Shown here piece after piece: positions 16,544-18,121 of a DNA stretch of 64,000 nt (position 1 is its first letter; every line of letters begins with the position of its first letter). Below the pieces are notes generated by a model. The model did no database searches. It saw nothing but the letters and a program-made list of their open reading frames with translations, and was not told the origin of the DNA. A program made the translations under genes and the position numbers. Source of the stretch: Phyllobates terribilis (Eukaryota); the NCBI RefSeq assembly GCF_046119375.1, contig NW_027362767.1, positions 284,394,001 through 284,458,000 of the forward strand, in the 5' to 3' direction.

Positions 16544-18121
16544 CAGTGCCTACAAGTAGTATTCAACCCCCTGCAGATTTAGCTGGTTTGATAAGATGCA
16601 AATAAGTTAGAGCCTTCAAACTGCAAACGAGAGTAGGTTTTATGAACAGAAGCATAAATCTTACAAACCAAAAAGTTATGTTGCTCAGTTGAATTTTATT
16701 AAATTTTAAACATAAAAGTGTGGGTCAATTATTATACAACCCCTATGTTTAATATTTTGTGGAATAACCCTTGTTTGCAATTACAGCTAATAATCGTCTT
16801 TTATAAGACCTGATCAGGCCGGCACAGGTCTGTGGAGTTATCTTGGCCCACTCCTCCATGCAGATCTTCTCCAAGTTATCTAGGTTCTTTGGGTGTCTCA
16901 TGTGGACTTTATTCTTGAGCTCCTTCCACAAGTTTTCAATTGGGTTAAGGTCAGGAGACTGACTAGGCCACTCCAACACCTTGACTTTTTCCCTCTTGAA
17001 CCAGGCCTTGGTTTTCTTGGCTGTGTGCTTTGGGTCGTTGTCTTGTTGGAAGATGAAATTATGACCCATCTTAAGATCCTTGATGGAGGAGCGGAGGTTC
17101 TTGGCCAAAATCTCCAGGTAGGCCGTGCTATCCATCTTCCCATGGATGCGGACCAGATGGCCAGGCCCCTTGGCAGAGAAACAGCCCCACAGCATGATGC
17201 TGCCACCACCATGCTTGACTGTAGGGATGGTATTCTTGGGGTCGTATGCAGTGCCATCCAGTCTCCAAACGTCACGTGTGTGGTTGGCACCAAAGATCTC
17301 GATCTTGGTCTCATCAGACCATAGAACCTTGAACCAGTCTGTCTCAGAGTCCTCCAAGTGATCATGAGCAAACTGTAGATGAGCCTTGACATGACGCTTT
17401 GAAAGTAAAGGTACCATACAGGCTCGTCTGGAACGGAGACCATTGCGGTGGAGTACGTTACTTATGGTATTGACTGAAACCAATGTCCCCACTGCCATGA
17501 AATCTTCCCGGAGCTCCTTCCTTGTTGTCCTTGGGTTAGCCTTGACTCTTCGGACAAGCCTGGCCTCGGCACGGGAGGACACTTTCAAAGGCTGTCCTGG
17601 CCGTGGAAGGCTAACAGTAGTTCCATAAGCCTTCCACTTACGGATGATGCTCCCAACAGTGGAGACAGGTAGGCCCAACTCCTTGGAAAGGGTTTTGTAC
17701 CCCTTGCCAGCCTTGTGACCCTCCACGATCTTGTCTCTGATGGCCTTGGAATTCTCCTTTGTCTTTCCCATGTTGACCATGTCTGAGTGCTGTTCACAAG
17801 TTTGGGGAGGGTCTTAAATAGTCAGAAAAGGCTGGCAAAAGAGATCTTTAATCCACACATGTGAAGCTCATTATTCTTGGTGCCTGAACTACTTCTTAAT
17901 ACTTTAGGGGGACCAAACAGAATTCTTGTTGTTTGAGGGGTTGAATAATAAATGACACTCTGGATTAACTTTTAACGTTTTAAAAAAAAAAAAAAAAAAT
18001 TGCTGCAGTGCATTTCCCACTTCCAGGCTGATCTGCAGTACAAATGTCACAATGCCAAGCTAATTCCGCATGTGTCAACCAGCTAAATCTGCAGGGGGTT
18101 GAATACTACTTGTAGGCACTG
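16544..18121 (-). mobile_element. Tc1/mariner DD34E transposon, full length, intact ORF
   Basis: TA TSD at 16542-16543 and 18122-18123; perfect 45-bp outer TIR CAGTGCCTACAAGTAGTATTCAACCCCCTGCAGATTTAGCTGGTT; inner direct repeats near 16725-16745 and 17935-17955. Confidence 0.97.
16749..17780 (-). CDS. Tc1-family DD34E transposase, uninterrupted (343 aa; 340 aa from MGKTKE at 17771)
   Basis: HTH N-terminus; [29 protein letters not shown] and SPDLNPIE motifs with 34-residue D-E spacing; C-terminal KGYSTKY; no stops or frameshifts. Confidence 0.95.

Follow-up and report, generated by a model that had tools for sequence, protein, structure and literature searches.

The 64,000-nucleotide stretch of Phyllobates terribilis DNA analysed here (positions 284,394,001 to 284,458,000 of contig NW_027362767.1, assembly GCF_046119375.1; the whole stretch is called the window below) carries at positions 16544–18121 a complete transposable element of 1578 bp, which opens with CAGTG at 16544 and closes with CACTG at 18121. 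It belongs to the Tc1/DD34E class of the Tc1/mariner superfamily: each of the four features tested for this assignment was found, namely a TA target-site duplication, terminal inverted repeats (TIRs) of the CAGTG type, a DDE triad and a paired-like helix-turn-helix (HTH). The window holds a single copy of the family. An earlier reading made from the letters of the stretch, the sequence-only reading, had presented the element as a potentially active vertebrate transposon of a rare kind. Our analysis makes it likely that the element is, instead, an ordinary, young and slightly decayed copy of an abundant poison-frog Tc1 family, and of one that is apparently known already.

Ends of the element and its transposase gene

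The outer TIR at the 3′ end of the gene (16544–16588, forward strand, starting CAGTG) is complementary at 45 of 45 positions to the outer TIR at the 5′ end (18077–18121, reverse strand), and when the TA dinucleotides on the left (16542–16543) and right (18122–18123) are included, the repeat finder returns a perfect inverted pair of 47/47 nucleotides. The identical outer repeats and the intact TA duplication described in the sequence-only reading are both borne out. A 33-nucleotide end motif has two sites in the window, both at the element's ends, where 100 shuffles gave an expectation of zero, and it has no exact match in JGI metagenome contigs. Contigs, and not raw reads, of four public runs were aligned to the stretch, and their depth is to be taken neither as copy number nor as strand or expression level. 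Those of the host list no variant letters in 16544–16588, and contigs of sister copies exit the element directly after the TA at 18122–18123 into differing flanks, with loose ends at 18124. The unique flanks, 16442–16512 and beyond 18146, drew no contigs from any run, and no contig bridged a junction.

A further repeat sits about 175 bp inside each end, at 16718–16744 on the 3′ side (forward strand) and at 17936–17961 on the 5′ side (reverse strand), both placed by alignment with the outer repeats, with which the former has the core TTATTAT(A/T)CAACCCC in common. Each end thus has an outer and an inner repeat in direct orientation, the inverted repeat/direct repeat (IR/DR) arrangement of Sleeping Beauty (SB), in which the inner repeat is presumed to be a second transposase-binding site, as predicted from this likeness.

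The transposase gene runs along the reverse strand from 17780 to 16749 (16749–17780) as an uninterrupted open reading frame (ORF) of 343 codons plus a stop, counted from the first ATG; counted from the methionine of MGKTKE, the start used by most relatives, the protein has 340 residues. It comprises PAI and RED HTH subdomains, a linker that contains MVPLLS, a glycine-rich strip and a DD34E domain. Three Pfam families match it, all above their curated cut-offs: HTH_SB at 81.9 bits, HTH_Tnp_Tc3_2 at 69.5 bits and DDE_3 at 52.3 bits (cut-off 28.6). Residues 120–343 align without a gap to the entire catalytic domain of SB100X (5cr4; E 9e-84); at the N-terminus, matches were obtained to the NMR structures of the SB PAI and RED subdomains (2m8e and 5unk are listed as SB structures). 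Because the catalytic residues of SB are D153, D244 and E279 (PMC4820933) and the numbering of the present protein runs three higher in this gap-free alignment, the triad falls on D156, D247 and E282 (reverse-strand codons at 17313–17315, 17040–17042 and 16935–16937, respectively), with 34 residues between D247 and E282. The uninterrupted 340/343-residue frame and the complete triad noticed from the letters alone are both confirmed. A candidate polyadenylation signal, AATAAA, lies on the reverse strand at 16695–16700, 49 nucleotides past the stop codon.

Private changes of this copy

The sequence-only reading had proposed a comparison with the family consensus, and we compared the copy with the family's commonest form, from which it differs at 8 of 1578 positions (0.5%): 17062, 17380, 17416, 17420, 17501, 17753, 17930 and 18060. 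These changes are private in the sense that the letter at each differs from nearly all host contig depth; three further positions (16995, 17175 and 17598) are polymorphic within the family. Two of the private changes are non-coding, one directly outside the right inner repeat (17930, where G makes up 29987 of a summed contig depth of 30466 in X1, the host DNA run) and one between the inner and outer repeats (18060, where T makes up 23323 of 23566 in the same run). The other six lie inside the ORF, on the reverse strand, and every one of them is a replacement, none being silent. Conservation was judged against a set of 78 full-length relatives, 55–96% identical to the query. By this measure the replacement nearest the N-terminus, H10N (17753, CAT to AAT), affects a variable site (L in 69 relatives, H in 6), and the remaining five strike sites that are 87–96% conserved: L94F (17501, CTC to TTC; L in 70/78, 90%), R121C (17420, CGT to TGT; R in 71/78, 91%), K122M (17416, AAG to ATG; K or R in 75/78, 96%), R134H (17380, CGT to CAT; R in 68/78, 87%) and R240H (17062, CGT to CAT; R in 73/78, 94%). 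At 17062 the other letter accounts for 24134 of the 24544 summed contig depth in X1 and for all of the depth in X10, a run from a second organism. Four of these five replacements lose a conserved basic residue, three of the eight private changes (R121C, R134H and R240H) are CpG transitions, and H10, L94, R121, K122, R134 and R240 are kept in every intact dendrobatid and fish copy that was aligned.

The sequence-only reading had itself cautioned that residues in its segments RACMVP and HNF might be specific to this copy. That caution was justified for C121, M122 and H240, which are private, but not for N241, which is the host's commonest letter, and it overlooked N10, F94 and H134, which are private too. 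It had also named non-conservative differences at conserved positions as evidence that would speak against activity, and the five replacements at conserved sites supply a part of that evidence.

R121 and K122 correspond to R118 and K119 of SB, in the segment that serves as inter-domain linker and nuclear localization signal (NLS), and K122 is the first residue of a conserved K(K/V/T)PLL linker motif that reads KVPLLS in the commonest form and MVPLLS in this copy. The SB linker spans residues 110–127, and its KKPLL stretch (residues 119–122, K119 being the first) contacts the clamp loop (PMC4820933); the SB NLS has been assigned to residues 97–123 (PMC7827188). The first residue of the motif differs between groups, according to a published catalogue (PMC9777934), and in the zebrafish BZ/ZB transposase, where the motif is KTPLLN, the first and last residues were both subjected to saturation mutagenesis, with gains reported for the last residue only (PMC12455594). 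In view of the six replacements, five of them at conserved residues and two of these, R121C and K122M, in the linker/NLS segment, we lean towards the view that the transposase encoded by this copy is weakened. Two findings weigh against so unfavourable a judgement. All six replacements leave the catalytic triad and the glycine-rich strip untouched, and the fall of five of six on conserved sites is not above chance (P ~0.08), so that enrichment of private changes at conserved sites, which had been considered, was dropped as not significant. Enrichment at chance level speaks for a loss of protection, with damage left unproven. As for the ratio of replacements to silent changes, six to zero has a probability of 0.22 under neutrality and of 0.018 at the dN/dS (ratio of replacement to silent divergence) of ~0.3 that separates lineages of the family, and it follows that the copy has drifted free of constraint since its insertion, as expected.

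These changes bear directly on the claim that this very copy is fully autonomous, currently active and able to mobilize itself, which was the view taken in the sequence-only reading and which we consider quite unlikely. Much in the element would suit it, since ORF, triad, glycine-rich strip, 45/45 TIRs, inner repeats and TA duplication are all intact, the copy is just 0.5% from the commonest form, and histidine is found in other full-length relatives at residues 134 (6/78) and 240 (4/78). Against these stand the six private replacements without a silent change, the five conserved sites among them, the cost of two basic residues in the segment matching the SB NLS and linker motif, and a share of CpG transitions such as is to be expected in methylated, unselected DNA. 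Moreover, the exact protein of this copy has no match among 15 billion sequences, in which sister and commonest-type proteins were found, as fits a private variant. A weakened transposase would still leave the copy a substrate: with ends identical to those of the family's commonest form, it should remain movable by the transposase of intact sisters, if that is expressed.

The family in poison frogs and fishes

The host DNA run yielded 29079 contig pieces on the stretch, 14654 of which are at least 99% alike, a tally of pieces and not of copies. From a 40-Mb run of the second organism (X10), a gap-free contig of 1433 nucleotides was recovered that spans the whole ORF with 8 differences from this copy. 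The many near-identical pieces, together with this gap-free ORF contig of the commonest form, argue for very recent activity of the family. The divergence of this copy from the commonest form falls from 0.5% to 0.3% when CpG sites are set aside. Taken with a neutral rate for anurans of roughly 1–3 × 10^-9 per site per year, these figures would give the copy an age of about one to a few million years.

Close relatives of the protein are numerous, and intact ones are among them. A protein cluster at 90% identity unites intact 343-residue proteins of Ranitomeya imitator, R. variabilis and Dendrobates tinctorius with three Logan assemblies, all 95–96% identical to this copy, and the host's commonest form is separated from the Ranitomeya and Dendrobates forms by about five residue differences, e.g. 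N241 and Q317. The youth ascribed to the element in the earlier reading is thus upheld, in that it is a young copy of a recently active family, but its supposed rarity is not: in the published catalogue, 183 genomes contain intact copies of the ZB-like group, three anurans having more than 100 (PMC9777934), and 99 are recorded in Oophaga pumilio for the parameter-matched element described below; the three dendrobatids named above have intact 343-residue relatives as well.

The family appears to fall in this ZB-like group and to be in the catalogue already. The entry ZB-Ooppum1 of O. pumilio describes an element of 1598 bp with a coding sequence (CDS) of 1032 nucleotides, a protein of 343 residues, 168 copies (99 of them intact), 45/45 TIRs, CAGTG ends and TA targets, and ZB-Ranimi1 of R. 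imitator likewise has 343 residues (Genes 2022, PMC9777934). The 1032-nucleotide CDS, the 343 residues, the 45/45 TIRs, CAGTG, TA and DD34E of ZB-Ooppum1 all recur in the present element, as does the 343-residue length of ZB-Ranimi1, and within the part of the catalogue available to us these two are the only anuran ZB-like entries of this protein length. The difference in overall length (1598 bp as against 1578 bp here) counts against the identification, which is a match of parameters and not of sequence. An A20 tract in the 5′ untranslated part (17981–18000), at which contigs appear cut, may be the source of the length gap. The O. pumilio genome is also known to hold 0.4 Gb of Mariner/Tc1 DNA, its repeats overall being less than 2% divergent between copies; Tc1 expression is high in its oocytes, with transcripts above 100 FPKM (fragments per kilobase of transcript per million mapped reads), and phylogeny supports fish–frog transfer of its Tc1 elements, to which elements of freshwater fish are closest (Mol Biol Evol 2018, PMC6278860). 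A poison-frog host, high abundance, freshwater-fish relatives and horizontal transfer are points shared with the present family. However, those high-copy families take their names from the RepBase entry that matched best (e.g. Tc1-3_SSa and Mariner-4_DR), and the correspondence is one of description only.

Whether any source of transposase is left in the host is a separate question. That the family is extinct there, all its copies being young-looking fossils, seems doubtful to us. The neutral decay of this copy would agree with extinction, and the RNA run with contigs on the element (X15) offers little to the contrary, for these contigs, ~97% alike, belong to another organism and possibly reflect carry-over of DNA. 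An extinct family is nevertheless hard to reconcile with contig pieces of which half are at least 99% alike, with a commonest form for which very small runs from two other organisms suffice to assemble the entire ORF gap-free, or with the 99 intact copies of the parameter-matched O. pumilio element (PMC9777934). The oocyte transcripts of O. pumilio (PMC6278860) point the same way, although they belong to a family named by best RepBase match, which may be a different one.

As a separate observation on the metatranscriptomic X15 run, some of its contigs join across 121–139 nucleotides within the catalytic domain, between 17051 and 17192; these may stem from derivatives with an internal deletion or from fusion to other repeats.

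Several of the dendrobatid relatives are filed under the names of host genes. The RefSeq proteins XP_073420629.1 of D. tinctorius, labelled "dnaJ homolog subfamily C member 8 isoform X1", and XP_077143783.1 of R. variabilis, labelled "N-alpha-acetyltransferase 40 isoform X2", are both 343-residue Tc1 transposases of this family. Each copy is located inside the range of the gene whose label it bears, so that both labels are artefacts of annotation. Several gene models of R. imitator (P0005, P0006, P0008, P0011, P0018 and P0020) have transposase parts fused to host exons of unrelated function, which encode hydrolase, thioesterase or other domains, and they are probably chimeric predictions from intronic copies. 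That the host has domesticated the transposase gene and maintains it by selection is an idea that we regard as extremely improbable. Its sole support is a long open reading frame. Against it stand the perfect TIRs, the TA duplication and thousands of near-identical relatives; the six private changes of the ORF, all replacements and five of them at conserved sites, are the opposite of purifying selection, and the host-gene names are artefactual. Domestication and artefact readings were both rejected.

The family resembles SB in the gap-free alignment of the catalytic domain, in the matches to PAI and RED and in its IR/DR ends, yet the ends of SB open with CAGTT where those of the present element open with CAGTG, SB is a salmonid reconstruction where the present element is a natural copy, and it belongs to a separate clade. 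Passport, a natural active copy from flatfish, and Frog Prince, from Rana pipiens, are likewise vertebrate Tc1 elements with TA targets that are used as tools. The SB and ZB groups share 58–61% identity in the DDE domain (PMC9777934). The zebrafish element ZB/BZ, a naturally active Tc1 tool (PMC9777934, PMC12455594), has a transposase of ~340 residues, IR/DR ends, TA targets and a K-x-PLL linker motif in common with the present family, the motif being KTPLLN in BZ and KVPLLS here, with M for K in this copy. ZB differs in its TIRs of 201 bp, as against a perfect inverted repeat of 45 bp here, and in an activity demonstrated by experiment, where that of the present element would be a prediction.

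A named relative outside frogs lies in a South American fish. A copy from the characiform Prochilodus magdalenae (L002:1181–2737) aligns with the frog copy from the first base to the last at 86.1% nucleotide identity; it is flanked by TA, it has one mismatch to the frog copy in the first 37 nucleotides of the ends, which are common to both, and it carries a perfect pair of 23-nucleotide inner repeats at the same places as the frog inner repeats. Between the two copies the synonymous divergence (dS) is 0.17 and dN/dS is 0.34. A dS of 0.17 is far below expectation for vertical descent over the frog–teleost split. Two metagenome assemblies from ENA each contain a copy, whose identity to the frog element is 92% in ERZ14022236 (L003) and 88% in ERZ21659626 (L004); the copy in the latter is 96% identical to the Prochilodus copy and encodes an intact 340-residue transposase. 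The source is probably fish host DNA in gut or environmental samples. A fragment from Electrophorus voltai is 82% alike at the protein level. The low dS and the end-to-end identity of 86.1% support the conclusion that horizontal transfer would have brought the family into frogs and Neotropical fishes. These frog–fish data agree with the published picture of transfer, to which they add named South American fish hosts. We put forward more tentatively, as a possibility short of an expectation, that the family's commonest form, as distinct from this copy, is an autonomous Tc1 with natural activity whose copies continue to transpose in several species of poison frog, within a transfer network of Neotropical frogs and freshwater fishes (Prochilodus, Electrophorus).

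Insertion site, proposed history and significance

The element was inserted into AT-rich, microsatellite-like DNA. AT-repeat targets have been reported for ZB/SB-type elements (PMC9777934), and the AT-rich tandem repeats of 16–33 bp and the (TA)52 microsatellite found to the right of the insertion (18251–18372 and 18554–18657) fit the reported target preference. The sequence-only reading had placed the element inside the tail of a Penelope-like element. This nesting was not confirmed: Pfam found no reverse transcriptase (RT) or GIY-YIG domain in ten ORFs of 70–108 residues within ~4 kb, a scan that decayed remnants can escape, and of the Rfam scans, one over the region surrounding the element (13500–21000) gave no hammerhead with an E value of up to 1, and one over the whole window gave no family that reached its gathering score.

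Other repeats were noted in the window. Left of the element, 16190–16399 is the end piece of another repeat of extreme abundance, with summed contig depths of ~12,000 and ~250,000 in two DNA runs; its commonest form continues otherwise past 16399, which marks the piece as truncated, and its appearance is that of a terminus of a further DNA transposon. At 15526–15732 lies a palindromic repeat resembling a miniature inverted-repeat transposable element (MITE), with an inverted self-match of ~78%; the sub-threshold matches of microRNA families in Rfam to this palindromic AT-rich DNA are most likely due to chance and were set aside. Old remnants of other Tc1 transposase genes are present at 45466–45858 and 5296–5343, 69–85% identical to the present gene over 48–135 nucleotides.

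By analogy with SB, we propose that the transposase of this family would bind the outer and inner repeats through its paired-like domain, that the bound ends would be paired and then cut at CAGTG, and that the element would be reinserted at a TA, which would be duplicated in the process. In the history that we envisage, the family would have entered frogs and Neotropical fishes horizontally and then amplified recently, and after this copy was inserted, neutral drift would have produced its 8 substitutions (0.5%), three CpG transitions among them.

By itself the finding is of little weight, intact Tc1 copies being common in frog and fish genomes and the family apparently catalogued. The list of private changes nonetheless carries a practical lesson, namely that an open frame and perfect ends are insufficient to mark out a good candidate for activity, and that candidates are better sought among copies that agree with the family's commonest form. 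If that form is indeed active, a vertebrate transposase of natural origin would be available ready for use in this copy or, with greater likelihood, in a sister that has not decayed. Several RefSeq/GenBank gene models of poison frogs are contaminated by this transposase. For the biology of the family, the frog–fish pair, at 86% nucleotide identity from end to end and a dS of 0.17, with named fish hosts that are South American, makes a clean and geographically coherent case of horizontal transfer, and if the transfer network is real, its geography would give a handle on how such transfers occur.

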